This document shows, piece after piece, positions 651-38,675 of a stretch of DNA of 64,000 bases. A model generated the notes under the pieces. The model was given only the letters and a program-made list of their open reading frames with translations. It was not told the origin of the DNA and made no database searches. Location: IMG/VR virus record IMGVR_UViG_3300042367_000228, positions 308,017 through 372,016 of that record. One strand, written 5' to 3'. The position numbers were made by a program, and so were the translations under genes. The first letter of the stretch is position 1. Each line of letters begins with the position of its first letter.

Positions 651-794
651 ATGGACTTAATTAAAAGTATTATCCACAATGTATTAGTACACCCTATTCT
701 ACCATTCTTACCACGCAGATTAGCAAGAACAATACATGAAAAGAATGCGCTATGGGCGTATGGAAAAGATGGCCCGTTTAACGGCTTAGACTAG
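651..794 (+). CDS. small hypothetical protein, paralog of 41904-42062
   Basis: 47 aa MDLIKSIIHNVLVHPILPFLP; AAGGAG RBS; shared HN.lVHP..F.P...A..lH..NA.W. Confidence 0.65.
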   Translation: MDLIKSIIHNVLVHPILPFLPRRLARTIHEKNALWAYGKDGPFNGLD

Positions 795-803
795 GAGAGT
801 ATT

Positions 804-3252: not shown

Positions 3253-3333
3253 TGTTTATTATGTGTTATAATGTTTAAAATAATTGATTACATCACCGTT
3301 AGTGTAATAATCTTGTCATTTGTACCGATTAAG

Positions 3334-4185
3334 TTAGACCGTAGTTACTGTTCCAACTTTAAAACCTTCCAACTTAGCTTGTTTCTTAAGCATGTTCTTT
3401 AATTGCTCATCAGACAAGTCAGATACTTTAGTGTGTATCGAAGCGCCAGCGGCATTGGCCATGTCAATAGTATACTGACTAGTTCCTGTCTTTTTACCCA
3501 CTCCAGTTGCCCACGTTCTACACGCTTGGTTGATAGTTAAATTGTTGTATTTAGGTCGTCTCCACTGCACCATTTGCAATTTCAATCCGTCCTCTAATGT
3601 AGGCATGATAGCAACCGGTTCACCATCAGCTGCACGAATATAACCTAATGCGCCATAACTTTTAGCAATACCGCTGTACGCAATATTACCTGGATTGTTT
3701 GTTCTCCAAGAGATAGACCCGCCGGTGCGTCTTTCGTTGCCAATAATAACTTCTCTGCCTTTTGCAGATGCGGTCGTTGGTGCAGGTCCTGATCTCGACG
3801 GTTCAAGTTCTGCTCCTACATCTACAGACGCTTTAGATTTTACTTCAGGTTTCGATGGAGCTGGCTCGCTCTTAACTATACTTAATGAACTCGGTAATGC
3901 ACCTTTACTCATGTAATCTGACATGCCTGGTACTTGTTTAATCGCACCATTCATTGCGTCAATTGTAGTAGCATCCGGTTTGCCTGTAACAGGCAAACCC
4001 ATTTCTTGTTGGGCTTTTGAAATAGCAGCAGTTGTGAGATCGTCCATTTCACCAGTTGTATTAACATTATAATTAAATGCCGCTAATGCCTTTTGCAAGT
4101 TTGCAATTTCGGATCCACTAGGACTAGCAGGTACTTTTAGTAAAGAGCTAGCTTCTTGTAATGTTTTAAATTCTGAAAATCTCAT
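3334..4185 (-). CDS. peptidoglycan-binding domain + NNPGNI lysozyme-like domain protein
   Basis: G.EI..LQ.AL...G.MD..T..AI...Q...GL..TG..D; SWRTNNPGNI. Confidence 0.7.
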   Translation of the reverse strand: MRFSEFKTLQEASSLLKVPASPSGSEIANLQKALAAFNYNVNTTGEMDDLTTAAISKAQQEMGLPVTGKPDATTIDAMNGAIKQVPGMSDYMSKGALPSSLSIVKSEPAPSKPEVKSKASVDVGAELEPSRSGPAPTTASAKGREVIIGNERRTGGSISWRTNNPGNIAYSGIAKSYGALGYIRAADGEPVAIMPTLEDGLKLQMVQWRRPKYNNLTINQACRTWATGVGKKTGTSQYTIDMANAAGASIHTKVSDLSDEQLKNMLKKQAKLEGFKVGTVTTV

Positions 4186-4196
4186 GTGTTGTCCTA

Positions 4197-4529
4197 TTAT
4201 GAATAGTCAGGTAACGGACCGCCGTATTTAGAACTTTTAATTGATTTACCGTCTAGTTTAACACGTTTTTTACCAATCTTTTGTGTTTTGCCAGTTTTAC
4301 GAGCCATAAATCCTTGTGCTTTACAACTCGATTCGTCACTTGCACCTTTTTTCTTATTACTTAAACATAATTCTTTACTAGCTTTGCCACGTTCGTCTAA
4401 TTGTGCGTCTGCTTTGACTTTGTATCTCGATTCAGTTGCATGCCCGCGTGCAGGACGATCGCTTGTGCGCCCTGGGCGTTTTGAACTAACACCCAATTTT
4501 TCTTCTTTAATAAACTCTTGAGCTCTCAT
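4197..4529 (-). CDS. basic hypothetical protein
   Basis: 110-aa ORF in operon; MRAQEFIKE leader. Confidence 0.7.
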   Translation of the reverse strand: MRAQEFIKEEKLGVSSKRPGRTSDRPARGHATESRYKVKADAQLDERGKASKELCLSNKKKGASDESSCKAQGFMARKTGKTQKIGKKRVKLDGKSIKSSKYGGPLPDYS

Positions 4530-4540
4530 GTTATTTCCTA

Positions 4541-5350
4541 TTATCTGTTAATGTATTCAAATACATTAAGCCATTGACGTTTGCCAATTGTAGATTTTAA
4601 CAATGTTAAATCAGCGCACGTCTTGTAGCGCACATCAATTCCATTTGATTCTACTACTGTTATCACTGCATCTTCTTGATCTGCAACAGCCTCTGCTATA
4701 TCTAAATAGCTGTGTGCTAGACCTGAACCTGCATTCCAAATACCCGAACCATGTATGTTTTTAATAAAATCAATGTGTAATTTACACACATCACCTACCC
4801 ATACCCAATCACGTTTAACTTGATCTGCATTGTTCCAAACTGATATACATCCTGTTTTACGAGCTTCTTCTTGCCACTTGTATATTATGTTAGCTTGATT
4901 ACCTCGCAAGTGCATGTACTTGCCGTAAACATTAAAGTATCTAAATCCTTGTACAGATGCTTTGTGAGCAGGTTGTCTAAATACCCAACGATCAAACAAA
5001 TATTTGCTTATTGCATATGGTGTTAATGGTGTACAATCGGCGGTTTCGCTAAAGTCTTTTCCATCACCATATACAGAACTTGTACTAGCATACTGTAAGT
5101 GTACTTCATTTATTTGGCATTCATTAAACAACCATTGACTAAATTCATAATTTTGAATCATAAACTTGTCAATGTTAGTTTCTGATTTATCAGTTAAAGC
5201 ACCTAAATGTATTACCCATTGATATTTTTTAATATCGGGTAAGTTATTAGGATCATAGTCCCATCCTTCTACATGCCATCCTTCAGCAGATAACCATTCA
5301 ACCATATTACGGCCGATAAAGCCGTTATGGCCAGTTACTAATATATTCAT
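4541..5350 (-). CDS. hldD: NAD-dependent epimerase, ADP-L-glycero-D-manno-heptose 6-epimerase-like
   Basis: TGHNGFIG, YASTSSVYG, YAISK (YxxxK), GFRYFNVYG, RDWVWVGD. Confidence 0.75.
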   Translation of the reverse strand: MNILVTGHNGFIGRNMVEWLSAEGWHVEGWDYDPNNLPDIKKYQWVIHLGALTDKSETNIDKFMIQNYEFSQWLFNECQINEVHLQYASTSSVYGDGKDFSETADCTPLTPYAISKYLFDRWVFRQPAHKASVQGFRYFNVYGKYMHLRGNQANIIYKWQEEARKTGCISVWNNADQVKRDWVWVGDVCKLHIDFIKNIHGSGIWNAGSGLAHSYLDIAEAVADQEDAVITVVESNGIDVRYKTCADLTLLKSTIGKRQWLNVFEYINR

Positions 5351-11200: not shown

Positions 11201-11274
11201 ACTTCTTTCGAGTCATTTGACTTGTCCTACACAACTTGTTATACTTTATTAAACTACTTTAATACAGGTGTAAT

Positions 11275-15284: not shown

Positions 15285-15501
15285 GTTTGCCCCAATGCCG
15301 GCCGGCCGGTTCTCATTTGATGATGCCTGGTTATATTGTGCTACACTAACATATAATAACAATTATGACTGGCGCATACCAACTGAAGATGAATTTTGCA
15401 ACTACGAAGAAATTGATTGCGATGCGTTTGATCAGAATGATGAAGGTCTTAAGATAGCTAAAGTAACACATAAAATCTGTCCAGTGCGCACTGCTGATTA
15501 A
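15277..15501 (+). CDS. DUF1566/Lcl-like mini protein
   Basis: family motif; close paralog of 15066. Confidence 0.85.
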   Translation: MLEFAPMPAGRFSFDDAWLYCATLTYNNNYDWRIPTEDEFCNYEEIDCDAFDQNDEGLKIAKVTHKICPVRTAD

Positions 15502-15560
15502 AATACCATTTGTAAAGTCCTAAGTTTTGCGCTATAATAATGTTTTATGTAAGGAGCCAT

Positions 15561-15851
15561 ATGCTAGTAGCCACTTGTCAATCAAAATTTATAACGTATG
15601 CCGAAGCTGTTATGTATTGTTTGTTTTTAGATCACCAAGGAAAGAAAGGCTGGCGGTTGCCAACTTTACTTGAATGGGCAGATACTGCAGATGGCAGACT
15701 TACAACTAATACATGGTATCGAGAGAGTACGAATGAAGAACGAGCATTGCTTGCAAAACAATACAAACATACCCAGCAAGCTATAGAAGCTATGATTGAA
15801 CCATATGAAAATCGTAAAACAGGTATAGCAGTTGCAGTGAGGGATGAATGA
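15561..15851 (+). CDS. DUF1566/Lcl-like mini protein
   Basis: EAVMYC..GKKGWRLPT; start after AGGAG. Confidence 0.8.
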   Translation: MLVATCQSKFITYAEAVMYCLFLDHQGKKGWRLPTLLEWADTADGRLTTNTWYRESTNEERALLAKQYKHTQQAIEAMIEPYENRKTGIAVAVRDE

Positions 15852-16075
15852 TAGAAATATTAGCTAACCCACCTGGGATCAGTCGGAAGTTATATAATCG
15901 CGATGCAGCCTTTTTGTATATAATTACTCTAGTCCATAATGGACATGCAGACTGGCGATTTCCTACTCCAGACGAATGGGTTAACAGTCCTTTAGCGTAT
16001 ATGGCATGGCATCAAGGAAGAATTGATGACGATAGATTTTTCAGCTATCACATATACCCAGTGAGAGATATATGA
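15848..16075 (+). CDS. DUF1566/Lcl-like mini protein
   Basis: DWRFPT.DE...PVRD. Confidence 0.8.
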   Translation: MIEILANPPGISRKLYNRDAAFLYIITLVHNGHADWRFPTPDEWVNSPLAYMAWHQGRIDDDRFFSYHIYPVRDI

Positions 16076-16266
16076 TTAGATTTGCTAAACCATCCGGATG
16101 GTTAAACAACACAACTCCGGAAGCTGCTGACATGCACGTATTGTTTTATGAAGAAGACGGTTTAAAATACTGGAGGAGAGCAACTAACGAAGATTTTATT
16201 GACTTTGCAATACACGTTCCTGAATCATTGTTATCTAATACATGTATTCCGGTAAAGGATTTATGA
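16072..16266 (+). CDS. divergent DUF1566/Lcl-like mini protein
   Basis: EDG..YWR.AT.ED...PVKD. Confidence 0.65.
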   Translation: MIRFAKPSGWLNNTTPEAADMHVLFYEEDGLKYWRRATNEDFIDFAIHVPESLLSNTCIPVKDL

Positions 16267-16484
16267 GTATGCTTGAATTAGCCCCGCCATCAGAAAAAAT
16301 GACATATGACGAAGCAATTATGTATTGCTTTTGGTTAGAACACGATGGAAAGAAAGGCTGGAGAATGCCAACACATGAAGAATGGGCAAAGACTAAAGGC
16401 ATCATGGTGTACACTTGGAGACAGAATGATCACCGTACGATGATGGATACGATGCCTGTAGTACCGGTAAGAGGACAATTATGA
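16263..16484 (+). CDS. DUF1566/Lcl-like mini protein
   Basis: YDEAIMYC..GKKGWRMPT. Confidence 0.85.
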   Translation: MSMLELAPPSEKMTYDEAIMYCFWLEHDGKKGWRMPTHEEWAKTKGIMVYTWRQNDHRTMMDTMPVVPVRGQL

Positions 16485-16894
16485 AATGGTTTAACCGAAT
16501 ATTCAATCGCAATGTATATTTAAAATTTGACGTACCTACAAACCCTCCAGACAACAACAGAGTGCGTTATGTTGTAGGAGTCCCGGTTAATCACTATGAG
16601 AAAAAAATCATTGAAATCGTTTATACTGGAATACTATGTTCCAGTGATGATGAAGCAACGATGCATTTGTTTATGATGAGTAAGCATGATGGAAAGAGAG
16701 GATGGCGACTACCTACAATACACGAAGCTATATACTGTTCAGAGCTATCAGTAGTTAAGCATTTCTCTGATTGGAATTCACTTAGAGTTCCATTAGAATT
16801 AGTTTTAGTAAGAGATGTTACAGAAGATGAGTATAACTATTACAATGGACCTATAACACGTTTCTTTAAGCAGTTTGCGCAGTGGACTTATTGA
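16481..16894 (+). CDS. DUF1566/Lcl-like protein with N- and C-terminal extensions
   Basis: DEA.M...DGKRGWRLPT..E...LVRD. Confidence 0.75.
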   Translation: MKWFNRIFNRNVYLKFDVPTNPPDNNRVRYVVGVPVNHYEKKIIEIVYTGILCSSDDEATMHLFMMSKHDGKRGWRLPTIHEAIYCSELSVVKHFSDWNSLRVPLELVLVRDVTEDEYNYYNGPITRFFKQFAQWTY

Positions 16895-16925
16895 TAGCTA
16901 AATAGCAGACAATAAGGAGAGTGTT

Positions 16926-17909
16926 ATGTCAAAAGAAGAAGTAGGTACAGGTGTAAGCCAAGAAGAGTCAGTTACGCTTAATGGCGTAACAGTAACAGAA
17001 GAATCACATGCTGATGTATATGCTGAAGCACACGCAGGTGCAAGTGCAGAAGTAACTGATACAAGTGTATCGGCAGAAGCACACGCAGGTGCAAGTGTTG
17101 GTGCAGAAGCCGGTGCAAGTGTTACTTTAGGTGATGTTACATTAGAAGCTGAAGCACACGCTACTGCTGAAGTTGAAGCCACTGCTAACGCAAATGCAGG
17201 ATGGACAGGTACAGATGTAGTAGCTGAAGCAAGCGCAGGTGTTGAAGCGCGTGCAGAAATTGGTGCAAGTGCATCAGTTGGTAATGAAGATGTTGGCACA
17301 GTTAGTGTTTCGAGTGGTGCATACGCAGAAGCTAATGCAGGTGTTGAAGTAAGTGGTTCAGTTGGATTACACGGCGCACAAGGATATGCCGGAGCATCAG
17401 TTGGTGCAAGTGTTGGTGTAGAAGCTAATGCAGTAGCAGAAAGCCATGGTGTGTCTGCTGAAGCAGGTGCAGGTGTTAGCATTGGATTACAAGCAGGTGC
17501 AGAAGTTGGCGGTAAAGCTGAAGTACATGGCAACACTATTAGCATCGGTGTAGAAGGTGAACTAGAGTTATTAGCAGGTGTAGAACTTAATGCTGAATTA
17601 TCAGTTGATACTACTCCAGTTGTAGAATTAGCAGAACAAGTAGCCGATGACACTGCAAAGCTAGCAGAGCAAGCAGCGTTAGAAGCAGCCCGCATTGCTC
17701 AAGCAAAAGCAGAATACGCTGCTCGCGTTGCCCAAGAAGAAGCAGAACACGCAGCTAGAGAAGCACGAGAAGCATCAGAAAGAGCAGCTAGAGAAACACA
17801 AGCCGCAGCTGAAAGTGCAGCTAGAGAAGCAGATCGTTTAGCTAGAGAAGCAGCCAATCGTGCAGCAAATGAGATGAATAAAGCATTTAAAAAAGTAAAG
17901 TTCTGGTAA
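16926..17909 (+). CDS. Ala/Gly/Val/Glu-rich repeat protein with C-terminal coiled coil
   Basis: AEAHAGAS/GASVG repeats; AAREA heptads; AGGAG RBS; TAAATA upstream. Confidence 0.75.
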   Translation: MSKEEVGTGVSQEESVTLNGVTVTEESHADVYAEAHAGASAEVTDTSVSAEAHAGASVGAEAGASVTLGDVTLEAEAHATAEVEATANANAGWTGTDVVAEASAGVEARAEIGASASVGNEDVGTVSVSSGAYAEANAGVEVSGSVGLHGAQGYAGASVGASVGVEANAVAESHGVSAEAGAGVSIGLQAGAEVGGKAEVHGNTISIGVEGELELLAGVELNAELSVDTTPVVELAEQVADDTAKLAEQAALEAARIAQAKAEYAARVAQEEAEHAAREAREASERAARETQAAAESAAREADRLAREAANRAANEMNKAFKKVKFW

Positions 17910-18016
17910 AAGGCCCCGCTGTAACATGTATAGAGTAAACTTTCAGTTGACAAATTGTAAAGTTTACTTTATACTTTAATTTGTTTTAAGCAATCACACA
18001 GTAAAAAGGAGAAGTT

Positions 18017-18277
18017 ATGCACAAAATTATCTTATCCGCACTCAAATCTGGTGCAAAAACTCCGATAGAGCTTTATGATCTGTGTAGATGTGATCCATAT
18101 GATTTCGCAAGGATGCTAACTGATTTAGCTGATGCTGAAAAGATCGAACGACGCATTATTATTCCTAATCACGATCAAGTATATCGTTCACTAACACTAA
18201 TCCCTAACAACGTAATTGATGGATTGCCATGGGAAGTTATTCGGATAGAATACCGCTTGACAAACAAAACACACTAA
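18017..18277 (+). CDS. hypothetical protein (possible winged HTH)
   Basis: IL.AL..G.KT..EL...C; sigma70 promoter and RBS upstream. Confidence 0.6.
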   Translation: MHKIILSALKSGAKTPIELYDLCRCDPYDFARMLTDLADAEKIERRIIIPNHDQVYRSLTLIPNNVIDGLPWEVIRIEYRLTNKTH

Positions 18278-18313
18278 TTTATAATAAACACTTAACAACC
18301 GCAGGAGCTATAA

Positions 18314-18535
18314 TTGAAAATGCTAGAAGGAACAAATCAACAAGGCGATTTCGTAGTTATGTATGACGAAGAAACTTTATTAAATCAAAACTATTGGGAT
18401 TGTGATTGTTCGCATGAGTATATAAGACCCGTAACTGAACATCATTGCCAAGAATGCGGAGCTGATCGTGACGATAGTGAAATATCACACGAAGTCGAAG
18501 TTCAGCAACTTGTTTATAAAATAATTATTCACTAA
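18314..18535 (+). CDS. Zn-finger-like hypothetical protein, similar to 33169-33393
   Basis: TTG start after AGGAG; YWDCDC...C..C. Confidence 0.6.
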   Translation: MKMLEGTNQQGDFVVMYDEETLLNQNYWDCDCSHEYIRPVTEHHCQECGADRDDSEISHEVEVQQLVYKIIIH

Positions 18536-18549
18536 CAATGGAGGTAACT

Positions 18550-19620
18550 ATGCCGAATACACTTGAAACCACTGCTATTGCTATTTTAGAAGGAGAAGTA
18601 ACTACCACTACTATTTCCGATTCTGATTCACTCGAATTAATTGAACATCTGCAGGCATGGTTACCAAACTATCCTAAAGGCTCAAACAAATTTATTTCTT
18701 TCTTGCAACACAATGTATCGCCATTGTATGCAATATACGGTGTTTACTCTGCAGTTGATAATGGCAGCTTAGAGTTAACTTCACGTAACTTTCAATCTAT
18801 GATGCTATTTGAATCGGAGTTTAAAGACTTAATTAAGCATTTTGAGAATCCAGATAAGAAGACTAACTTCTTTGAATCGATGCGTAATGGTACTGAGATA
18901 TCAAGAGTGGAATTAGAATTAACCAGTCCATTCTGTATCCAACCTGAAGATGAGATCGGTACCGGTACATGGGAATACGTTGAACCCGAGTTACCTGAGA
19001 TTGATGATGACGATACAACAAATCCAGCTACTACGACAACCGCAAGTGCTCCTGGTACTATTCAAATTCCGTTAAAAGATATTCTTGATACTGCTGCTAA
19101 GAAGGTATTTGGTGTAGGAGTTAAAAAGACAGTTGCTGAAAAAGATCAAGAACAAGATGATCATGATGCATACTATGTATATACACAGTATTTGTATCAG
19201 TTCACTAGTGCATGGTTCCCTAACGACGCTCCTACTATCAATGTAGTATCGCAAAAGTTTTGGGATGAACATGAATGTATTGATGATCAACACATTTCAG
19301 AGTACTTAGAATCGATTATTCCAGATTGGTCTAATAACTGGTGTGAAACTACGGACAGTGTATTTGAATACACTGGCGGTTCAACTAAAGCAGAAGCTAT
19401 TGCTTATTTAAAAGCAACAGGGTTCTTTAAAGAAGAAGAACTATTTGATGTTGATGATGAAGAATCTGATAAAACAGATATCTTACTAAGTTATCTTGAA
19501 GGTCAACCTGAAGAAGTAATTTCTAAGTTTCTCAAAGAGGCACTTACACATCTTGATGATAGCCAAATTCAAGACTTAATTCAAAAGTATGAAGACGTTT
19601 GGCACGAAGAGGATGAATAA
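18550..19620 (+). CDS. acidic hypothetical protein
   Basis: long ORF; GGAGG RBS. Confidence 0.75.
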   Translation: MPNTLETTAIAILEGEVTTTTISDSDSLELIEHLQAWLPNYPKGSNKFISFLQHNVSPLYAIYGVYSAVDNGSLELTSRNFQSMMLFESEFKDLIKHFENPDKKTNFFESMRNGTEISRVELELTSPFCIQPEDEIGTGTWEYVEPELPEIDDDDTTNPATTTTASAPGTIQIPLKDILDTAAKKVFGVGVKKTVAEKDQEQDDHDAYYVYTQYLYQFTSAWFPNDAPTINVVSQKFWDEHECIDDQHISEYLESIIPDWSNNWCETTDSVFEYTGGSTKAEAIAYLKATGFFKEEELFDVDDEESDKTDILLSYLEGQPEEVISKFLKEALTHLDDSQIQDLIQKYEDVWHEEDE

Positions 19621-19689
19621 ATAACTGCTTGCACATCCGCGTGTAGTTTGTTATAATATGTTTTTACTTACTAACACGCGGAGCTTACA

Positions 19690-20394
19690 GTGTTTCTTTT
19701 ACTATCAACTAGCAACATCAAAACACAAAAAGGTGTTAAATTAGGATATGCTACTTATGTCTTACACTTATCACCATCTGATCTCAGTGGTGTTATCAAC
19801 ACTTGCCCAAAAGCAACACTAGGTTGCAAAATAGGTTGCCTAAACACTTCAGGTCACGGCGGCATGTACACTGACATTGAAGACAGTGTAGTTCAACAAG
19901 CTCGCATACGCAAAACAAAATGGTTTGCTACAGGACGCGACAGTTTCTTAGAAGCTCTAGTAGTTGACATCAAACGCGCAATTAAACAAGCTACAAAGAA
20001 AGGTCTTATTCCTGTATTTCGCCTCAATGGCACAAGTGATCTCTCATGGGAGAAATACAAAATTAACGGTATGAATATCTTTGAACTATTTCCAACTGTT
20101 CAATTCTACGACTACACTAAGGTGTTGCATCGTAAAGTTGGACACATCCATAACTATCATTTAACATTCTCTAGAGGCGAGTCTAATCAAGCAGAAGTTG
20201 ATTATGCTATTGCTAACGGTATGAATGTTGCTTATGTATTTGATAAAACTCCAGCGACATACGATGGTATGACTGTATTTGATGGCGACGACACTGACTT
20301 ACGATTCCTTGATCCGACAGGTGTAATTGTAGGTCTTAAGGCAAAAGGTCGCGCACGTAAAGACACTAGTGGATTTGTAATTAGAACAAAATAG
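19690..20394 (+). CDS. GP88-family protein (CxxxxxxCxxxC)
   Basis: TCPKATLGCKIGCL, FRLNGTSD, FYDYTK, YHLTFS, DGD.TDLRFLDP, GLKAKG. Confidence 0.75.
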   Translation: MFLLLSTSNIKTQKGVKLGYATYVLHLSPSDLSGVINTCPKATLGCKIGCLNTSGHGGMYTDIEDSVVQQARIRKTKWFATGRDSFLEALVVDIKRAIKQATKKGLIPVFRLNGTSDLSWEKYKINGMNIFELFPTVQFYDYTKVLHRKVGHIHNYHLTFSRGESNQAEVDYAIANGMNVAYVFDKTPATYDGMTVFDGDDTDLRFLDPTGVIVGLKAKGRARKDTSGFVIRTK

Positions 20395-20401
20395 GATTAT
20401 T

Positions 20402-20614
20402 ATGATTGAATCAGGAATGTGTTCTAGTAATTTTCTAACATACGATGAAGCCTGGCTCTTCTGTATCACTTGCACACACTTCAAGAAATATGACTGGCGA
20501 ATGATGACACGACGTGAATTTATAGAGTATAAACCAAGAGAAAAATGGTTCGAAGTCACCGGCGTGTCACATTTAATAGCCCAGGTACTACCTGTGAGAG
20601 ATGTAAATGATTAG
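20402..20614 (+). CDS. DUF1566/Lcl-like mini protein
   Basis: YDEAWLFC..KYDWRM.T. Confidence 0.8.
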   Translation: MIESGMCSSNFLTYDEAWLFCITCTHFKKYDWRMMTRREFIEYKPREKWFEVTGVSHLIAQVLPVRDVND

Positions 20615-20858
20615 AAGAGATTTAGCTTACAATACACACTTAGAATACTTAGATTATTCTAACTATAAAATGGATTGGGACAGCGCATGGTTATACTGTG
20701 CTACCTGTACATATAAAGACATGTATGATTGGCGAATGCTTACTCCATATGAATTTCGTAATGATCTATACATACACAGCTGGCATGCCGCTTCACGAAA
20801 GGACAACTTTCCAGCATTTGTATTACCAGTTCGAGATAGAGGCCCCGCTGTAACATGA
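20607..20858 (+). CDS. DUF1566/Lcl-like mini protein
   Basis: WDSAWLYC..YDWRM.T..E...PVRD. Confidence 0.8.
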   Translation: MIRRDLAYNTHLEYLDYSNYKMDWDSAWLYCATCTYKDMYDWRMLTPYEFRNDLYIHSWHAASRKDNFPAFVLPVRDRGPAVT

Positions 20859-21073
20859 GCATAGAAATATTACCAACAATTGATAAACAATTTACATACG
20901 ATGAAGCAATGATGTACTGCTTTTTTCTTATTATAGACGGCAAAAAAGGATGGAGACTACCTACAAGAGAAGAATATAATTCTTCTGTTAAAATATGGGG
21001 TTGGCATCAAGATGATGGTAGAGCATCAACATCTGATCTTTTCAAAGTAACCCCAGTGCGGGACTCTGACTAA
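20855..21073 (+). CDS. DUF1566/Lcl-like mini protein
   Basis: YDEAMMYC..GKKGWRLPT.EE. Confidence 0.85.
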   Translation: MSIEILPTIDKQFTYDEAMMYCFFLIIDGKKGWRLPTREEYNSSVKIWGWHQDDGRASTSDLFKVTPVRDSD

Positions 21074-21144
21074 ATTACCATTTGCTTACTAATAAATATT
21101 TTGCTATAATATGTTTTTATTTACAAACCTTACGGAGTACGTTT

Positions 21145-21441
21145 ATGTCTACAGAACTTATTGAAAAATTAGCACACGCACCAGGTCCGCATTCAGCTTA
21201 CATTGAGGATTCTGAATTACGTGATATGGCAATTGTATGGGCAGTTGCAATTCGTAATGAAAATCGAGTATCGGGTACTGAATCAGAGTATTTAAAACTA
21301 ATGCGTGACATGATGGAAAATGAGCCATTTTTGTATAGACGATTTGCTGACTATCTAATCAATACTGTTGATGAAGGCACATATAAAGAAGCGTGGAGTC
21401 AAACAGCAGATAGAATTCGTAAAACATTACTACCTAAGTGA
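21145..21441 (+). CDS. hypothetical protein
   Basis: promoter cassette; start after GGAG. Confidence 0.65.
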   Translation: MSTELIEKLAHAPGPHSAYIEDSELRDMAIVWAVAIRNENRVSGTESEYLKLMRDMMENEPFLYRRFADYLINTVDEGTYKEAWSQTADRIRKTLLPK

Positions 21442-21448
21442 GGTAAGC

Positions 21449-21655
21449 ATGACACACGTAGAACATGGACCGAGATCCGAAAACAAAATGACTTATGATG
21501 AAGCAATAATGTATTGCTTCTGGTTTACTTACAATGGTAAGAAAGGATGGCGACTTCCGACCTTTCATGAATTTGTAGATGGGAACTCTTGGTATAAAGA
21601 TGCTGAGATTACTAAACGCAAGTGGTATGTAAAACCTGTGAGGGACATAAAATGA
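21449..21655 (+). CDS. DUF1566/Lcl-like mini protein
   Basis: family motif; start after GAGG. Confidence 0.85.
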   Translation: MTHVEHGPRSENKMTYDEAIMYCFWFTYNGKKGWRLPTFHEFVDGNSWYKDAEITKRKWYVKPVRDIK

Positions 21656-21969
21656 ACTTTGAAATAGCACCACGCGACAAATGGTTAGCAGAAACTCCTT
21701 ACGACCAAGGAGCGATGTATTGCCTATTCCTTGAAATTGATGGAAAGAAAGGATGGCGATTGCCAACTAATGAAGAAGCTGACATGTTAGTAAACACAGT
21801 AGATCCGGGTAATGATTTTGAGAATCCCGAAGTCCTTCCAGAGTTAGAGGAGTTTAATTCCTATTGGTTTGATCCTGATCATTGGGGGTTTTGGACACAC
21901 GAAGATACAGTTGACGACTTTGATCTTGACGAACTGTTTACTGCGATTCCAGTAAGGGACATAACATGA
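21652..21969 (+). CDS. DUF1566/Lcl-like protein with acidic insert
   Basis: MNFEIAP...YC..GKKGWRLPT.EE...PVRD. Confidence 0.8.
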   Translation: MNFEIAPRDKWLAETPYDQGAMYCLFLEIDGKKGWRLPTNEEADMLVNTVDPGNDFENPEVLPELEEFNSYWFDPDHWGFWTHEDTVDDFDLDELFTAIPVRDIT

Positions 21970-22259
21970 ATATTGAAATAGCACCAAAAACAACGGAGAT
22001 ACAAGCCACGTGGGATGAAGCAGTTATGTATTGTTTTTTTCTTGAAATAGATGGAAAGAAAGGATGGAGACTGCCTACTAAAGAGGAATTAGATTATATC
22101 TACCATTCAAAAAATGATTTCATTGATGCCTACTACTGGTCCTCTACTGAGTACAATGGCAGCAGCGCCTGGGGTCAGGTTTTCACCAGTGGCACCCAGT
22201 TCAGCTCCAGTAAGAACGGCGGCAGCTACTACGTTAGAGCAATAAGGGACATAATATGA
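21966..22259 (+). CDS. DUF1566/Lcl-like protein with DGR-type variable region
   Basis: WRLPTKEEL...YWSSTEY....AW.Q.F.SG........YVRAIR. Confidence 0.9.
   Translation: MNIEIAPKTTEIQATWDEAVMYCFFLEIDGKKGWRLPTKEELDYIYHSKNDFIDAYYWSSTEYNGSSAWGQVFTSGTQFSSSKNGGSYYVRAIRDII
22128..22250 (+). other. putative DGR variable region (VR) plus IMH-like 3' end
   Basis: 22 of 35 codons end in C and none in A; variable codons are all derivable from AAY by A-to-N change. Confidence 0.7.
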
Positions 22260-22333
22260 ACTTTGAAGTCGCACCTAACGGTGCTCGAACTGATAATTGC
22301 CATATGCAAAACTTAACTGGAGAACTACGATGA
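22256..22333 (+). pseudogene. truncated DUF1566-family remnant
   Basis: MNFEVAP start, stop after 25 aa. Confidence 0.5.
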
Positions 22334-22806
22334 GAAAATCCCTATCACATAAAGAAATCCTAATACTAAAACTCAATAATCTTTTAGCTACTTCTGAATC
22401 ACTCGAAGACAAACTCGTAACCGAGAATAATCAATGGCAATGCCGTGCAACAGTCCTACGCAGCGATATTCAAAATTTGATTGACTATGTAGGCTGGTCG
22501 GTAGAAGAGAATAATATGAATATTGAAATAGCACCAAAATCTGCCGAGGAGTCATGTAGTTGGGATACTGCACGAACATATTGTTTATTTCTTAACTTTG
22601 ATGGAAAAACTGATTGGCGACTTCCAACAAAAGAAGAACTAAATCAAATCTATGAATCAGATAATGATTTTCGTAGTGGTCGATACTGGGCTTCTAATGA
22701 ACAAAGTGTAGATACTGCTTGGAGTCAAAGTTTTGAAAATGGTAGCAGATACCCTAACTTTAAGTTCCACGGTGGCCTATACGTTAGACCAGTAAGGGAC
22801 TTATGA
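22330..22806 (+). CDS. N-terminal helical domain fused to DUF1566/Lcl-like domain (internal start 22516)
   Basis: MNIEIAPK...DWRLPTKEEL...YWAS.E....AW.Q.F.NG...YVRPVR. Confidence 0.8.
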   Translation: MRKSLSHKEILILKLNNLLATSESLEDKLVTENNQWQCRATVLRSDIQNLIDYVGWSVEENNMNIEIAPKSAEESCSWDTARTYCLFLNFDGKTDWRLPTKEELNQIYESDNDFRSGRYWASNEQSVDTAWSQSFENGSRYPNFKFHGGLYVRPVRDL

Positions 22807-23069
22807 TTATTGATTATAAGATTGATCGTGCTCCGTCACGTATAGTAAACAACTATGAAGAGGCTTGGCTGTATTGCCTTACCTGTAATCATGATGGACA
22901 TAATGATTGGAGGTTACCTACTGTAGACGAATGGCAATATTCGTCTACAAACACAATGCCTTTAGAAGCTTATTATGAAAACAATTATTTCTTTAAAGTT
23001 GAACCGGCTATGCAGAATAAGGCAGTTCCAGTACGTGAAGTAAAATATTCTTTACAAATCAACAAATAA
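22803..23069 (+). CDS. DUF1566/Lcl-like mini protein
   Basis: YEEAWLYC..GHNDWRLPT. Confidence 0.85.
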   Translation: MIIDYKIDRAPSRIVNNYEEAWLYCLTCNHDGHNDWRLPTVDEWQYSSTNTMPLEAYYENNYFFKVEPAMQNKAVPVREVKYSLQINK

Positions 23070-23135
23070 TTGTTATACTATATTTTTTTAAACACTACAG
23101 CAAGCAAGGCCCCGCTGTACAAACAGGAGCATAAC

Positions 23136-23723
23136 ATGGCAACACGTAGCGCAATTGGTTATATGAGAAACGATGGTACTGTTCGAGCAGTGTACGTGCA
23201 TTGGGACGGATACTTATCACATGTTGGTAAAACACTTATTGAGAACTATGACTTAATTGGTGTAGGCGATTTATGTGATTTAGGTGACATAAGCTCATTA
23301 GGCGAAACAATTGAAGATACTGAGTTTTACGGACGCGATCGCAACGAAGATGATATTGAAGCACATGAGTTTGCATCTGAACATGAGTTTGTAGATTGGT
23401 ATAATGATTCTGAGTTTTTCTATTTAATAAAAGATGACACATGGTATGTGTCAGAACATTGCGCAGAGTTCTTGTTACTTGCAGATCGGTTAAAAGCTAC
23501 AAAAGTTGAGTATACCGATTATATTCGCCCAGATGAAACAACAACATCCTACAGTGCAAGAGATGCAGTAGTAGCAATGGTAGCTGATGGTGCAGTTGAA
23601 CCAGTGTACATGATTAAGCTGTTACTTGATCGTATTGATCATGAAACATTAGAAGAGTTGTTGAAAGATGAATTCCATATTGACGATATCAATTCAGAAT
23701 GCTATTTTAAGGAGAACGAATAA
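23136..23723 (+). CDS. conserved phage hypothetical protein
   Basis: MATRSAIG...VYVHWDGY...VG..L. Confidence 0.75.
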   Translation: MATRSAIGYMRNDGTVRAVYVHWDGYLSHVGKTLIENYDLIGVGDLCDLGDISSLGETIEDTEFYGRDRNEDDIEAHEFASEHEFVDWYNDSEFFYLIKDDTWYVSEHCAEFLLLADRLKATKVEYTDYIRPDETTTSYSARDAVVAMVADGAVEPVYMIKLLLDRIDHETLEELLKDEFHIDDINSECYFKENE

Positions 23724-23983
23724 TGACTAACCAAAAAGTTAAAAAGCCAGTTGTAAAGAAACGCATTATACAAGTTGGAACACATAAGTTTCGTATTGCT
23801 GAAACTGATCTACCTCATAACGGAAGAGTTACACTAAGTGATCCTCATATACAAGAACGTGGGCCTGTACAGGAACTCGTAGTATATGCAACAGCAAGTT
23901 CTGATACATACGAACCAGGTCGCAAGTATGCGTGTTTTTACAATCTTCGTAGCAAGCTCGAAGGCTACTTTACGGTTAATTAG
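23723..23983 (+). CDS. hypothetical protein
   Basis: coupled ORF. Confidence 0.55.
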   Translation: MTNQKVKKPVVKKRIIQVGTHKFRIAETDLPHNGRVTLSDPHIQERGPVQELVVYATASSDTYEPGRKYACFYNLRSKLEGYFTVN

Positions 23984-24149
23984 GAGGTACCGTGCTTAAC
24001 CGTGATGTATTTGAAAACAATGTAATCAAGGCACTTGAAGATTACATAAATTACAACAATCAGATAACTCCTCTTAGTGAGGATTTCTTTCATAGAATCG
24101 AAGCACTGAAACAAAAGGCACAGGAGTTACAATCTAAACAGGATAAATC

Positions 24150-24539
24150 ATGAACATTACATTTGCAGGATTAAAGACAACTGGTAAAGTAGAAACCGTT
24201 TGGGCTGTAATTGATTTAGAGAGAATAACTTCACCTAACCGTTGGACTCACTATACTGATTACATTGTAGTATGGGGTAGACGAGGAGGCAAGTTAAGAA
24301 CTATACGGATCAATCAAGATTATCAAATAACCTTAAACGATAAAATATTTATTGACGACTATGAGCCATGGGCCGCTACTTTAATATTAGATCGCGGCTA
24401 TGTAGGCGATGCTGCTAATCGAATATATACAAAGTTTAAAAAAGGTTACAAACCAGTTAAGGCTGAGAATTTAGCAGATGTATATCCAACCTTTGAAAAA
24501 GATTTAGATAAGATCAACTTTTGGGAGCAACTGAAATGA
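24150..24539 (+). CDS. WGR-domain-like protein, paralog 1
   Basis: VVWGRRGGKL...K.KKGY. Confidence 0.55.
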   Translation: MNITFAGLKTTGKVETVWAVIDLERITSPNRWTHYTDYIVVWGRRGGKLRTIRINQDYQITLNDKIFIDDYEPWAATLILDRGYVGDAANRIYTKFKKGYKPVKAENLADVYPTFEKDLDKINFWEQLK

Positions 24540-24880
24540 AAATTACATTTGCAGGTTTGAAGACAACTGGTAAAGTAGAAACCGTTTGGGTTGTACTCGA
24601 GTTAGGTAAACATCAGCCGCAAGACTGGAATTATGATTATGTAATTGCTTGGGGCAGACGAGGCGGAAAGTTGCAATCTATGACTCGATTAGGATGTTGT
24701 CGACCAAACTTGGAATATAACTCTGCTCTTTTCCACAGGTATAGTACCATTGGCAAACTAATCAATAAGAAGATTAACAAAGAGTATGAAAGTATTGATG
24801 AAGCTCGGTTAGATGAAGTATATCCAGAGTTCGAAAAAGATTTAGATAAACTTGCATTTTGGGAAACATTGAAACTATGA
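24536..24880 (+). CDS. WGR-domain-like protein, paralog 2
   Basis: same N- and C-termini as 24150; IAWGRRGGKL. Confidence 0.55.
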   Translation: MKITFAGLKTTGKVETVWVVLELGKHQPQDWNYDYVIAWGRRGGKLQSMTRLGCCRPNLEYNSALFHRYSTIGKLINKKINKEYESIDEARLDEVYPEFEKDLDKLAFWETLKL

Positions 24881-25134
24881 AAATACCAACAACTGACGAG
24901 ATGTTTAATGATGCAATTCGCACTGCCTACAAAGATGCATTTTGTGGTACATATTATGAACGCCATCGTTACTTTCAATACAGTGCAATAGAGCTCGTTA
25001 CTGATTGGGCTAAACAACATGGCATCCGCCCTTATGCTAAATCAAGAGGACGATATGTACAGCTTAGAAAAAGAGACTGGTATATTACCGACCAAAAGAA
25101 GTATATGTGGTTTATTTTGCGATATGGACAGTAA
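24877..25134 (+). CDS. hypothetical protein
   Basis: coupled ORF; WF.LRY C-terminus. Confidence 0.6.
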   Translation: MKIPTTDEMFNDAIRTAYKDAFCGTYYERHRYFQYSAIELVTDWAKQHGIRPYAKSRGRYVQLRKRDWYITDQKKYMWFILRYGQ

Positions 25135-25204
25135 AAATACCATTTGCACACTAGTAAGTAATTTGCTATAATATGTTTTTAGTTAAACAACTGCGGAGCA
25201 CATT

Positions 25205-25378
25205 ATGGACCAAATACAACAATTTGAAGTAGACCAAATCACAGCAAGTCTTGCAGCTCAAGGCGTTACTAATTTCACAATGAAACGTGGTAACAACTGT
25301 GTTTGGGTCTCGTACAACTCAATCGATTGTTATTATATTTTCAAAGATGAAAAACTTGTTAACATACAAGTAGATTAA
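25205..25378 (+). CDS. small hypothetical protein
   Basis: 57 aa; promoter cassette with GGAGC RBS. Confidence 0.6.
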   Translation: MDQIQQFEVDQITASLAAQGVTNFTMKRGNNCVWVSYNSIDCYYIFKDEKLVNIQVD

Positions 25379-26160
25379 ATATGTTTGCAGTTATCAAAAT
25401 GATATCGTTTCATATTTGTAGATCCTTCTTTTCCGCAATGAGGACATATTATTTTTGGTTTATGTTGTTTAGCATAACTCATTTTTGCTTTTGTGTCAGC
25501 CGACATGTTTTGTTTAGAAAGGCGCATTTTTTCTATAGAAGATGCTGAATGAGTTTTGCCTTTGTGTGCGGCACTAATTTTAGCCTTGTGATCGTCTGAT
25601 TTAGGTCTTCCTTTTCCTGCTATACTTAGTTTAGCTTTAGTTTCAGCTGAAAGAGGTTTACCTTTATTAGGTGACGTCCTGCCTTTAGAAGCGACGCTTA
25701 GTTTAGCTTTAGTTTCATCTGAGACAGGTTTACGCGGTTTAGTTGAAACTCTGCCTTTTCCTGCTATACTTAGTTTAGCTTTGGTTTCAGCTGAAAGAGG
25801 AATACCTTTTTTGCGTGACGGCCGGCCTTTACTAGCCTGACTTATCTTTTTTCGGGTTTCAGCTGATGGAGATCGTTCTCTCATTGCAGCTGCATGATTT
25901 CGTTTAAGCCAACTATATAACTTATTATTACGATATTTTCCAGATGACATTCGATGGGCTGCAAATAGCAATTTATGATTATCTGGATAGATTTTTACAA
26001 GCAGTTGATGTGCTACATAATGAGCTTCAGGAGTTAGACGTACTAAGTTACTTGGTTCATTAGAACCGCCCATACATCGCGGAATAATGTGATGCTTTTC
26101 TGTGTAATCTGCAATCATATCTTTTGCAGTGAGTTGTTCGTATATTTTTTGGTAATTCAT
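25375..26160 (-). CDS. HNH homing endonuclease with NUMOD3 repeats
   Basis: EKHHIIPRCMGG...NLV.LT...H..AH; SAETKAKLS repeats; C-terminal CPHC..HF.NC. Confidence 0.9.
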   Translation of the reverse strand: MNYQKIYEQLTAKDMIADYTEKHHIIPRCMGGSNEPSNLVRLTPEAHYVAHQLLVKIYPDNHKLLFAAHRMSSGKYRNNKLYSWLKRNHAAAMRERSPSAETRKKISQASKGRPSRKKGIPLSAETKAKLSIAGKGRVSTKPRKPVSDETKAKLSVASKGRTSPNKGKPLSAETKAKLSIAGKGRPKSDDHKAKISAAHKGKTHSASSIEKMRLSKQNMSADTKAKMSYAKQHKPKIICPHCGKEGSTNMKRYHFDNCKHI

Positions 26161-26210
26161 TGTACTCCCCCAGATAAAAGAGAAGATTTGAATGTGTTAA
26201 ATAAATACAT
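26157..26210 (-). CDS. 17-aa leader peptide coupled to HNH gene
   Basis: MYLFNTFKSSLLSGGVQ*; AGGAG RBS; stop overlaps HNH ATG; conserved in second copy. Confidence 0.55.
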   Translation of the reverse strand: MYLFNTFKSSLLSGGVQ

Positions 26211-26280
26211 GGCTGGTACTCCTATATAGTATTAGAGCCGTTAGATCTGCCAGGATCGTGAACGGCATTTTTATTTATCA
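26211..26280 (-). ncRNA. conserved structured leader (hairpin + pseudoknot) of HNH cassette
   Basis: GCCGTT/AACGGC stem, GATC/GATC inner stem, loop CTGG complementary to CCAG next to RBS. Confidence 0.6.
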
Positions 26281-26371
26281 AAATTCCACTATGTGATTTA
26301 ATTACCATTTGCAATCCAGCTTACACTTTGTTATAATATATTTTTACTTACACAACAACGGAGTAGCAAAA

Positions 26372-26794
26372 ATGGCTTATGTATCAAAAGAAGATAAAGA
26401 CTCAAAAGCACCACGCTTAAGAGCATTAGCTAAACAGTATGGTTTGACTGCTACAGTAGCAGTTCGCCATCACAGCACCTTGCAGTTGAATGTATCAAAA
26501 GGCAAGATTGATTTTATCTCTAATCATGCAGATCGTGTAGCAGAACTTAATCATTGGTCAGCTGACAAAGAAAAAGACTATAATCAAAATAAAGATCGCA
26601 AGTATATGCAAGTGTCGCATCACTGGACTGATCACTTTGATGGCAACGCTAAAGAGTTTTTAGATAAAGCATTTGAGATCATGTTGGAAGGCTACTATAA
26701 TAACAGCGACGCAATGATTGATTATTTTGATACTGCGTTCTATGTTGACATCAATATTGGCAAATGGGATAAACCTTACACCGTTACAGCTTAA
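26372..26794 (+). CDS. conserved phage hypothetical protein
   Basis: IDYFDTAFYVDINIGKWDKPY C-terminal motif. Confidence 0.75.
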   Translation: MAYVSKEDKDSKAPRLRALAKQYGLTATVAVRHHSTLQLNVSKGKIDFISNHADRVAELNHWSADKEKDYNQNKDRKYMQVSHHWTDHFDGNAKEFLDKAFEIMLEGYYNNSDAMIDYFDTAFYVDINIGKWDKPYTVTA

Positions 26795-26808
26795 GAGGAG
26801 ATTAGACA

Positions 26809-27048
26809 ATGGCAATTACAGTAACAACAAATCAAACAGAGTCCATTGAAAAAATTAAGTATCCAATACTCGGAATTTTTCCAAATGGTACTATTGTTTT
26901 GTTTTCTTCTGAAACGTCTAGCACTATCTTGAAAGGAGAATCAAAAGACTATATAGGTCTTGATTGGAATCTCCAAAAAAACCGTTATATGCCCAATACC
27001 TGGGTGCCTTACCAAGGCACTGTAACATTATCTAATGAGACCTTATGA
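26809..27048 (+). CDS. hypothetical protein
   Basis: AGGAG RBS. Confidence 0.6.
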   Translation: MAITVTTNQTESIEKIKYPILGIFPNGTIVLFSSETSSTILKGESKDYIGLDWNLQKNRYMPNTWVPYQGTVTLSNETL

Positions 27049-27260
27049 ACGATTTTAATTTTGATTTAGACAAGATGAAAGCGGCTGTTGAGTCCGGACG
27101 CGCTTCAATTCCTAAAGAAGCCTTAGAGAGTTTTGAGGCATTTGATAAATGGTTAAATGAGGACAACGAACATGTTGTAAAAAAAGTTTGCGATCAAAAA
27201 GTAAATGGCGTTTGTCCATTACATAATCTATTTTGTCAATATCCTGAATGCGAGAACTAA
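27045..27260 (+). CDS. hypothetical protein
   Basis: coupled ORF; CPLHN..C.YP.C. Confidence 0.55.
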   Translation: MNDFNFDLDKMKAAVESGRASIPKEALESFEAFDKWLNEDNEHVVKKVCDQKVNGVCPLHNLFCQYPECEN

Positions 27261-27264
27261 CACG

Positions 27265-27480
27265 ATGTTAGAATTTAAATTAATCGGCTCTGTTCTTACT
27301 GTCATTGAACGACTTCATTCTTTTACCGAAACTCGTACTAGCTTTTGGTACTATAATATTGATACATGGTGTAAAAATCGTAACGGTAAAGAAAACGAAC
27401 CAATGGATTTTCAATGCGACCAAGGCACTATTGACTGGGTGAGAAAATACTACTTCCCAAAAGTTGGATTAACAAGTTAA
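27265..27480 (+). CDS. hypothetical protein
   Basis: ORF; start reassigned. Confidence 0.55.
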   Translation: MLEFKLIGSVLTVIERLHSFTETRTSFWYYNIDTWCKNRNGKENEPMDFQCDQGTIDWVRKYYFPKVGLTS

Positions 27481-27495
27481 CCTGAGGACCAAATA

Positions 27496-27720
27496 ATGAA
27501 CAAACAAATTAGAGATTTTGCAGAGCAAGCTGGTTACATGCCAAATGAACCAACTGCAGAGGCGTTTAACGAATTTAGCATTGAGAAATTCGCTAACTTG
27601 ATTATTAGTGAAGCATTGCGTATTTGCGATGAAGTATCAGAACCAGTTGATGAAGACGACCCTATGGTAAAAGGCGCGATTGTTTGTGCCGAAATGATTA
27701 GAGAAAACTTTGGTATATGA
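27496..27720 (+). CDS. hypothetical protein
   Basis: MN..I...A.QAG...EKFA.LII.E...C phage motif. Confidence 0.65.
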   Translation: MNKQIRDFAEQAGYMPNEPTAEAFNEFSIEKFANLIISEALRICDEVSEPVDEDDPMVKGAIVCAEMIRENFGI

Positions 27721-28094
27721 ACATCTCACGATTTAGCAAACAACGATTAAAAACATTATTTAAGACTGAGCATGTATCGGAAGAGTACTCGCTTCCATTG
27801 TTTAACTATCTGGTACATGGATTTAAACCTGGCAGTTTTTGGGAAAGTGTGTTAGCTAATGATTTTTTAGGCGCAATGATGTCTAGCCATCCAAGTAATC
27901 AAATTGTACATCTCAAGTATGCATCTATTTGGATATCTCATCGTATGCCACCTATAGCAGTTGGTAGTTACGAGAAAGTAGACAATTGGTTAAAGCTATC
28001 GGAAGATGAGCGCAGAACTATTTTAGAAGAGTGTGAGTTAATCTATACATCAAAAGAAGACACTTGGTTAGCACTTACTGAAGTTGAGCAATAA
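27717..28094 (+). CDS. hypothetical protein
   Basis: YL.HG..PGSF...VLAND motif. Confidence 0.7.
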   Translation: MNISRFSKQRLKTLFKTEHVSEEYSLPLFNYLVHGFKPGSFWESVLANDFLGAMMSSHPSNQIVHLKYASIWISHRMPPIAVGSYEKVDNWLKLSEDERRTILEECELIYTSKEDTWLALTEVEQ

Positions 28095-37955: not shown

Positions 37956-38675
37956 TTAGGGTTTGCGTTTACAGTTATCAAAATGGTATCGTTTCATATT
38001 TCCACCTCTTCCTATTTTATTACAGTAAGGGCAGGTTAATTCAATTTTTTGTTTTCCCTTCATTGCGGCACTTATGTTAGCTTTATGATTAGCTGATTTA
38101 AGTATACCAGTTTTAGCAGAACTTATGTTAGATTTATGATTATCTGAAAGTTGTTTACCATTATGCGCAGACCGCATCTTAGATTTAGTTTCCTCTGAAT
38201 GTCTTTTTCCTGTATTAGTAACACTTAATTTAGCTCGTGTTTTGGATGAAACAACTCTTCCTGTATTTGTAGAACTTAGCTTAGTCCGCATACTATCTGG
38301 CATACTTTTACCTTTGTTAGGCGACGGCCTTCCTGTAAGAGATGCACTTATTTTAGCCTTATGTTCATCTGATATAGTTTTTCCTTTATTAGCAATACTG
38401 GCTGCTATAGAAAACTTTCGTCTAAGCCATCCATACAATTTATTTGTAATTCTACAATTACCCATCATATTAGCCGCATACACTAATTTATGATTATGTG
38501 GGTAGATTTTTACAAGTAGCTGATGTGCTACATAATGAGCCTCGGGAGTTAATAATACTAAGTTACTTGGATTGTTAGAACCGCCCATACAACGAGGAAT
38601 TATGTGATGCTTTTCTGTATAGTCTGCAATCATATCTTTTGCAGTTAATTGTTCATATATCTTTTGATAGTTCAT
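37956..38675 (-). CDS. HNH homing endonuclease with NUMOD3 repeats
   Basis: N-terminal ~60 aa nearly identical to 25375-26160; S.E.K.K.S repeats; CPYC..HFDNC. Confidence 0.9.
   Translation of the reverse strand: MNYQKIYEQLTAKDMIADYTEKHHIIPRCMGGSNNPSNLVLLTPEAHYVAHQLLVKIYPHNHKLVYAANMMGNCRITNKLYGWLRRKFSIAASIANKGKTISDEHKAKISASLTGRPSPNKGKSMPDSMRTKLSSTNTGRVVSSKTRAKLSVTNTGKRHSEETKSKMRSAHNGKQLSDNHKSNISSAKTGILKSANHKANISAAMKGKQKIELTCPYCNKIGRGGNMKRYHFDNCKRKP

Follow-up and report, generated by a model that had tools for sequence, protein, structure and literature searches.

The window, 64,000 nucleotides long, makes up the final 64 kb of a phage contig of 372,016 bp (3300042367_000228), a placement taken from coordinates on a second assembly, 372,031 bp long, from a different sample. 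Between positions 11263 and 52554, it carries 40 mini-genes with a W[RK]LPT motif. Nine of these are arranged as a tandem array on the plus strand (20402..23069), which is apparent from the list of open reading frames and from weak Lcl_C matches. The 40 small ORFs (∼70–110 aa) share the N-terminal pattern M-x-E-I/L-A-P ... Y-D-E-A-x-L-Y-C ... G-W-R-L-P-T ... P-V-R-D. The occurrence of 40 paralogs in 64 kb represents an unusually large expansion, and among them only the genes at 21966 and 22516 have kept the full lectin-fold C-terminal half.

The first of these two genes (21966..22259, plus strand) encodes a stand-alone protein of 97 aa that matches Pfam PF07603 (Lcl_C/DUF1566) with an E-value of 4.7e-13 and a score of 49.9 bits, where the gathering cut-off is 34.9. 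An AlphaFold2 model of the protein has a pLDDT of 96, and its best match in the PDB is the C-terminal domain of Legionella Lcl (8q4e, TM 0.84), followed by snake C-type lectins. Based on these Lcl_C and C-type-lectin matches, the gene can be assigned to diversity-generating retroelement (DGR) target category ‘d’ (CLec2) as defined by Wu et al. The protein has no obvious N-terminal signal sequence, and its C-terminal half is occupied by the variable region (VR) that is the subject of this report. A protein search returned 62 homologs of ∼97 aa, all of which are derived from metagenomes (JGI, ENA, NCBI, Logan). The homologs are conserved in the N-terminal half and hypervariable at fixed positions in the C-terminal half. 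Among INPHARED phage records, there were no nucleotide matches to the queried sequence, and at the protein level the only match was a weak one to Salicola phage SCTP-2.

The VR stands out from the rest of the window by its composition. Codons 55–89 (22128–22232) end in C in 22 of 35 cases and never in A, precisely as a sequence-only reading of this DNA had described. Among 10,476 sliding 35-codon windows in plus-strand ORFs (mean 5.7 C-ending codons, sd 2.6), this segment is the unique maximum, and all others have fewer than 17. The GC content of the patch is 0.49–0.55 vs. 0.38 in the window overall. The same reading had pointed to a 3′ motif, GTTAGAGCAATAAGGGAC, and to an inverted repeat, GCACC-TAAC-GGTGC, at 22271–22284, and both are present. 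The inverted repeat (plus strand) is weak and is located 30 nt past the VR. Its 5′ GCACC arm is supplied by what remains of a mini-gene, 25 codons of its 5′ end (22257..22334, plus strand), located directly 3′ of the VR gene. The initial 20 nt of this remnant match the beginning of the L201 VR gene exactly.

The proposal that the inverted repeat acts as a downstream DGR hairpin found no support on closer inspection. Known phage DGR hairpins have a GC-rich stem of 7–10 bp and a 4-nt GRNA loop, and are found 4–34 bp from the VR (PMC3240598). The window hairpin, with its 5-bp stem and TAAC loop 30 nt downstream, departs from these published criteria. Its predicted stability is −4.7 kcal/mol (z = −1.9), and 12 of 200 shuffled sequences fold as well. 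With a stem that is too short, a loop that is not GRNA, and a fold near that of shuffled sequence, its role as a functional DGR element was rejected as unsupported. About half of the examined mini-gene VRs of another phage lineage (described below) are followed by GCACC-GCTA-GGTGC or by the compensated form GCTCC-GCTA-GGAGC, and these similar stems make a relationship between the hairpins possible.

Several other features of the window were recorded. The motif GGCCCCGCTGT occurs at 19 sites from 12277 to 63868, all on the plus strand, where 0.16 are expected. ACA usually follows it and AATA or TAATA often precedes it, and most copies lie immediately behind a stop codon or shortly ahead of a gene start. 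Its probable function is that of a promoter, a terminator, or a signal for processing that is specific to the phage. Two HNH + NUMOD3 homing-endonuclease-like genes on the minus strand (25375–26160 and 37956–38675) are ∼83% identical over roughly 390 nt. The region 804–5350 encodes a class 3 lipase, a non-specific DNA/RNA endonuclease, a peptidoglycan-binding protein, and an NAD-dependent epimerase, and the endonuclease is 61% identical to the product of a gene on an RT-bearing contig (L126).

The VR differs from a template repeat only at template adenines

The sequence-only reading had proposed that the segment is a DGR variable region, and that a template repeat (TR) with mismatches only at adenines should be sought beside a reverse transcriptase (RT). 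A predicted TR was made by placing A at each varying site of three VR variants, and JGI metagenome contigs were scanned with this prediction. A single match was found, on a 1,822-bp lake contig (Ga0209297_1053287, hereafter L125). Over 113 nt, the window VR (22128..22240, plus strand) and the L125 TR differ at 23 positions. Every one of the 23 mismatches falls on one of the TR's 48 adenines, and the remaining 65 bases are all matched (P = 5e-11, hypergeometric). The adenines are replaced by G (12), T (7), or C (4). A looser pattern, in which each position could be either its own base or an A, hit nothing but poly-A or low-complexity ends, and the loci collected with it (L001–L080) were discarded.

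The pattern of amino acid variation is of the same kind. In an alignment of 52 homologs, columns that correspond to the 19 AAY codons have an entropy of 2.74 bits, compared with 0.74 bits at other VR codons and 1.01 bits in the N-terminal half. Lys, Glu, Gln, Met, and Trp are the residues that are unreachable from AAY by adenine substitution, and in these homologs they make up 23 of 956 residues (2.4%) at AAY positions vs. 330 of 1195 (27.6%) at variable N-terminal positions. Four codons listed earlier as AAY-derived (GGC65, TTC73, GGC76, and GGC86) already have this form in the TR. GCC55 and TAC56 do derive from AAC, in keeping with the start at 22128 given in the sequence-only reading.

The homology to the TR extends 14 nt beyond the last mutated site and ends at 22240, after which the window diverges from the TR. 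The terminal segment TACTACGTTAGAGC (22227..22240, plus strand) is free of mutated sites, is the same in the TR and in the TR-derived VRs compared, and is possibly IMH-like. The VRs located close to cassettes differ from the TR by CGG vs. TAG, and the sequence AGATCAA is common to the pristine, hairpin-followed VRs of the other lineage. AGATCAA is missing 3′ of the window VR, in contrast to both the cassette-proximal VRs and the pristine mini-gene VRs of that lineage. The 3′ flank of the window VR (…GCAATAAGGGAC) resembles that of the window's own paralogs.

On the minus strand of L125, the TR is the fourth of five ordered elements. A target gene that has its own VR comes first, represented by its 3′ end, and a terminator hairpin, an ORF of 116 aa, the TR, and an RT ORF follow in this order. 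The RT carries a YVDD motif, begins ∼50 nt past the TR, and runs off the contig. The 116-aa ORF matches PF22296 bAvd (E 2e-8) and NF033474 DivGenRetAVD (E 1e-8), both below the curated cut-offs, and its size and position upstream of the TR are canonical. Full-length RTs of 371–379 aa that match RVT_1 are encoded on eight further cassette contigs (L184–L191). The best PDB match of the RT is a 328-aa RT chain (8ub7, E 4e-35), which we take to be the RT of the Bordetella phage BPP-1 DGR.

An adenine-only TR located beside a DGR-type RT and a bAvd gene bears out the DGR claim, albeit on a contig other than that of the window. We conclude that 22128–22240 is a genuine DGR product, copied from an AAY-rich TR, and that it codes for the half of the mini-protein, C-terminal in position, that binds ligand. 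If the segment were instead a horizontally acquired piece of GC-richer DNA, or a binding loop under positive selection, then a local shift in GC content and codon usage and mosaic patch boundaries could be accounted for, and both are seen here. However, an exact template with adenine-only differences sits beside RT and Avd genes, and variant VRs differ solely at positions 1 and 2 of templated AAY codons, with zero synonymous changes. Thus a non-DGR origin is exceedingly improbable, being effectively refuted by the L125 template and the adenine-only mismatches.

The second gene that kept a full-length lectin fold (22516..22806, plus strand; Lcl_C E 3.2e-16) had been described as having the same architecture as the VR gene. 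The architecture is indeed alike, but over 113 nt the neighbor departs from the TR at 22 non-A positions, and its C-terminal half is therefore classed as non-templated (decayed or never templated). A comparable case is found on L199, a contig syntenic with the window at roughly 72%–96% nucleotide identity over aligned blocks. The homologous gene of L199 has a similar N-terminus, and its VR has 11 non-A mismatches to the TR. The idea that the VR gene was the seed of the mini-gene family finds no support in these data. The 5′ part and the 3′ flank of the gene are native in composition, the L199 N-terminus is similar, and the pristine patch is limited to one sub-lineage, whereas 40 paralogs fill the window.

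The cassette is encountered mostly on short contigs. Thirty-one index blocks contain the exact Avd sequence, and 28 of them have contigs of <5 kb. Avd loci from 24 of the 31 blocks were inspected, and in every place returned the order was Avd–TR–RT followed by an oppositely oriented sulfotransferase gene. Near-identical cassettes are present in related lake phage contigs beside their own Lcl_C targets, and further Lcl_C targets flank several cassettes. L184, one of the cassette contigs, covers the opening 10.7 kb of a scaffold of 271,688 bp and has a VR at position 74. A gene that adjoins its cassette (gene at 3352–4344, minus strand) encodes a 330-aa target with a pair of Lcl_C domains, and a separate VR forms the end of each domain. 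Another, the 8.9-kb contig L186, has inward-facing VRs at both ends, which suggests that assemblies break at VR repeats.

Five TR alleles of about 113 nt were distinguished among the cassette contigs (L125, L184–L191), and the window VR is compatible with only one of them, the L125 allele TR-a. The alleles differ at a few non-adenine positions (AAC or AAT after GAG; TTC AAC, ATG AAT, or ATG TCA), and at least two alleles wrote VRs of one 327-kb phage contig. The VR of L125 itself (minus strand, near 1822–1690) is one codon shorter than the TR in its AAC-rich 3′ part, which points to slippage while the cDNA was made or to a subsequent deletion. In the IMG/VR relative L192, the sulfotransferase gene lies directly beside a homolog of the gene located upstream of the cassette in L187. 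This arrangement indicates an empty site that lacks the ∼3.5-kb target–Avd–TR–RT unit, and thus a presence/absence polymorphism of the whole cassette between the syntenic segments L192 7748–9107 and L187 1–4991.

A complete 372-kb genome without the cassette

An ungapped scan of both strands of the window, with template A treated as a wildcard, revealed no TR. The best non-self match was the paralog at 22650, with 47 non-A mismatches. Likewise, no RT was found among the 17 larger ORFs of the window that were scanned against Pfam. The earlier statement that the window lacks an RT and a TR is therefore accurate, and it can be extended to the whole 372-kb genome by pattern and protein-guided scans of IMG/VR. 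Three scans were made with patterns that any TR allele would meet. The VR was the sole match in contig 3300042367_000228, and no TR was recovered in IMG/VR. A scan guided by the RT protein returned closest relatives of 69% identity, all on contigs other than this one. Two neighbors of the cassette, the sulfotransferase gene and a gene for a 905-aa glycosyl/methyltransferase, were not found in the contig either. For the 372-kb genome, the absence of TR and RT is thus based on pattern and peptide-word scans of IMG/VR.

The contig is also free of gaps at its ends. A 16-nt tandem repeat, GCGCATAGCATAGCAA, is present at both ends of the 372-kb contig (window 63830–64000 and positions 1–130 of L213). 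Two contigs from other samples (L209 and L210) cross from the window end through the repeat to the contig start at 100% identity, which means that the genome closes on itself and that nothing is missing there. The 372-kb phage genome is circular or circularly permuted, and it is complete. The window is assigned to this contig through locus L121, which is 100% identical to positions 15430–28091.

A cognate DGR could conceivably reside elsewhere in this genome, at a distance of over 40 kb from its target, and have been overlooked. Cassettes usually occur on short contigs, as in the 28 of 31 blocks noted above, and the cassette contig bounded by VRs at both ends implies that cassettes can drop out of assemblies. 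Nevertheless, the two independent contigs join the genome ends directly with nothing between them, a second assembly measures 372,031 bp, the VR is the lone match to the TR scaffold in the contig, and neither the RT nor the genes that neighbor the cassette are found there. We consider an overlooked cognate DGR to be highly unlikely, and prefer the reading that this genome has no cassette.

Attempts to connect the genome that harbors the cassette with either of the jumbo-phage lineages that bear VRs failed. The sulfotransferase neighbor led only to the 16-kb relative with the empty site, and the 905-aa glycosyl/methyltransferase beside the cassette produced no link to VR-bearing lineages. A tblastx comparison of cassette flanks, up to 20 kb, with the window and related loci showed nothing in common except VRs. 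GTDB species genomes contained neither a TR nor a VR scaffold, and hence offered no host or prophage lead.

Rewriting in one lineage and stasis in another

Evidence for recent rewriting comes from a second phage lineage (L122–L124 and L194–L198), in which orthologous mini-genes carry different VRs although the contigs are 93%–94% identical. This disparity indicates recent diversification. Between L122 and L123, the 5′ part of the gene differs at 10 of 145 nt, and the VRs differ at 14 sites in nine codons. All 14 sites are TR adenines at codon positions 1 or 2 (P = 1.8e-6), and none is at position 3. A third variant, with the same scaffold and altered first and second codon positions, is present on L124, a 327-kb IMG/VR contig. 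For some VRs of the lineage, the template alleles differ. L124, for instance, has a VR derived from TR-a and L197 one derived from TR-d, at 93% identity between the two. L124 also contains a 1004-aa ORF (115–3129) whose middle part resembles, as judged from the translation only, an intein or homing-endonuclease insert in a conserved phage protein.

The window lineage behaves differently. In assembly consensus, its VR is invariant in all ∼50 contigs checked, ten other DNA loci among them. The exact 97-aa protein is encoded by 28 contigs, including contigs of 372,031, 355,155, and 266,256 bp, and a variant with one changed N-terminal residue is encoded by 20 contigs. Two more members of the cluster carry an identical VR. 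At the DNA level, seven more loci from other samples, together with L095 and L201, have 0 changes in the 113-nt VR, while their flanks have diverged by 1.4%–6%. Among the 62 homologs, there was no protein with a window-type N-terminus and a different VR. Since assemblies represent a consensus, they would not reveal VR variants that are rare in the population. At the level of contig comparison, VRs differ among close relatives in the other lineage and not in the window lineage.

The VR allele of the window is the same as that of L123. A tract at 22111..22240 (plus strand) is 100% identical to the VR gene of L123 (0 differences in 130 nt), whereas over the 145 nt upstream there are 40 differing sites (28%), of which 22 are third codon positions. 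The two copies agree at all 23 mutated adenines. They also agree at 22122 and 22126, just upstream of the TR-derived tract, where the window has A and the TR has G, and these two bases are common to L122 and L123 only. Independent homing events would not recreate the same 23 mutated adenines, and so the window and L123 copies would share a single writing event, with one of them having been transferred as DNA. The tract is probably a product of gene conversion. An assembly chimera is an unlikely cause of the identity: only 16 nt are shared past the last allele-specific site, which is less than the k-mer sizes in use for assemblies of this type.

L122 retains the 5′ 103 nt of the allele shared by the window and L123, and its 3′ part differs at adenine sites only. 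This pattern fits a later, partial rewriting inside that lineage. Together with A22122, A22126, and the native 3′ flank of the window gene, it suggests that the allele was imported from the other lineage into a native gene of the window lineage. From the sequences we infer the route and direction of this transfer, the direction from few informative sites, as well as the present inactivity of the VR.

The sequence-only reading had instead favored a remote target served in trans. If this hypothesis were true, the bAvd–TR–RT of a co-infecting jumbo phage would occasionally rewrite the VR, and the allele seen today would be the favorite of a selective sweep. Sample 3300044655 contains both a 355-kb contig of this phage and the cassette contig L186, making action in trans physically possible, and cassette and phage also co-occur in the KRAE22-1 sample series. 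Beyond the last mutated site, the homology to the TR runs on for 14 nt without interruption, and the hairpin 30 nt downstream has a stem like that in the other lineage. Moreover, a plasmid-borne avd–TR–brt of BPP-1 functions in trans (PMC5758913). Several observations are in conflict with this hypothesis. No VR variants were found in ∼50 contigs of the window lineage, and the allele is that of the other lineage down to its non-templated bases, which fresh homing would not reproduce. In addition, the 3′ flank is without AGATCAA, the hairpin is no better than chance, and the cassette co-occurring in 3300044655 carries TR-d, which is unable to yield the window VR. Service in trans is thus a doubtful explanation, and we judge it unlikely.

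The three sequencing runs in which the window is best represented (X1–X3) are outside the 24 runs listed for the cassette, and four others (X9, X12, X19, and X21) contain parts of both. The overlap of phage and cassette in the latter four is no more than suggestive.

We therefore favor a history in which the VR was written by a DGR, resides in a genome without a cassette, was imported as DNA, and has been static since. We assign a probability of roughly 0.78 to this combined reading. In the first step, an adenine-randomizing RT would have copied the AAY-rich TR-a into the VR of an Lcl_C mini-gene. During co-infection with the lineage whose mini-gene VRs undergo rewriting, gene conversion or recombination most likely then carried the allele into the window gene. 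After this entry as DNA, the window VR would have remained static.

Relation to known DGRs and possible roles

VRs of target category ‘d’ (CLec2) are found in DUF1566 and DUF823 proteins as well as in Fib_succ_major proteins, with LdtA of Legionella pneumophila as an example, and roughly one in two targets of this category is a short protein that consists of DUF1566 alone (Wu et al. 2018, PMC5758913). The system described here resembles these in having a VR in the C-terminal part of a DUF1566/Lcl_C domain, an AAY-rich TR, and Avd and RT genes. Unlike LdtA, which is a bacterial surface lipoprotein, the window target is a 97-aa protein without an obvious signal sequence that belongs to an array of 40 mini-genes in a jumbo phage. 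The genome of the window copy also differs from a category ‘d’ system such as that of LdtA in being without a cassette.

The adenine-specific differences between TR and VR, the Avd–TR–RT order, and an RT that is nearest to 8ub7 are reminiscent of BPP-1 (mtd VR, avd, TR, brt). The partial, 3′-side rewriting seen between L122 and L123 likewise agrees with a start that is fixed on the 3′ side and a crossover that varies on the 5′ side, as in BPP-1. The BPP-1 target is a receptor-binding protein of the tail fiber whose gene adjoins the cassette and has, downstream of it, a GC stem of 8 bp closed by a GAAA loop. In contrast, the present system comprises several Lcl_C targets, including small stand-alone targets elsewhere, and the window stem is 5 bp long with a non-GRNA loop. 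A VR that matches a distant TR with adenine-only differences is also seen in remote-target DGRs in Treponema denticola and other bacteria (PMC5758913). Those remote targets share the chromosome of the cassette (PMC5758913), whereas the window VR is in a complete phage genome that has no cassette. It has been argued that remote targets are not expected for phage DGRs (PMC5758913). The present case is a complete 372-kb phage genome that carries a pristine, DGR-written VR without a cassette.

Targets of phage DGRs are generally treated as being linked to their cassettes. Here, five TR alleles and a presence/absence polymorphism of the cassette circulate in lake and freshwater metagenomes. This provides a natural system for asking whether co-infecting phages share diversified alleles or the DGR machinery itself. 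The finding also raises the question of what a jumbo phage gains from small lectin-fold proteins that stand alone and number 40 in 64 kb. One tentative scenario, to which we give only a small chance, is that the DGR of one lake jumbo phage rewrites the Lcl_C mini-genes of co-infecting jumbo phages that have no DGR, or supplies alleles to them, and that the mini-proteins are diversifiable intracellular binders. If this is true, then hypervariable binding modules would circulate among phage genomes as a shared resource, and the mini-proteins would bind inside cells, for example to host defense proteins, rather than serve as receptor-binding parts of the tail.
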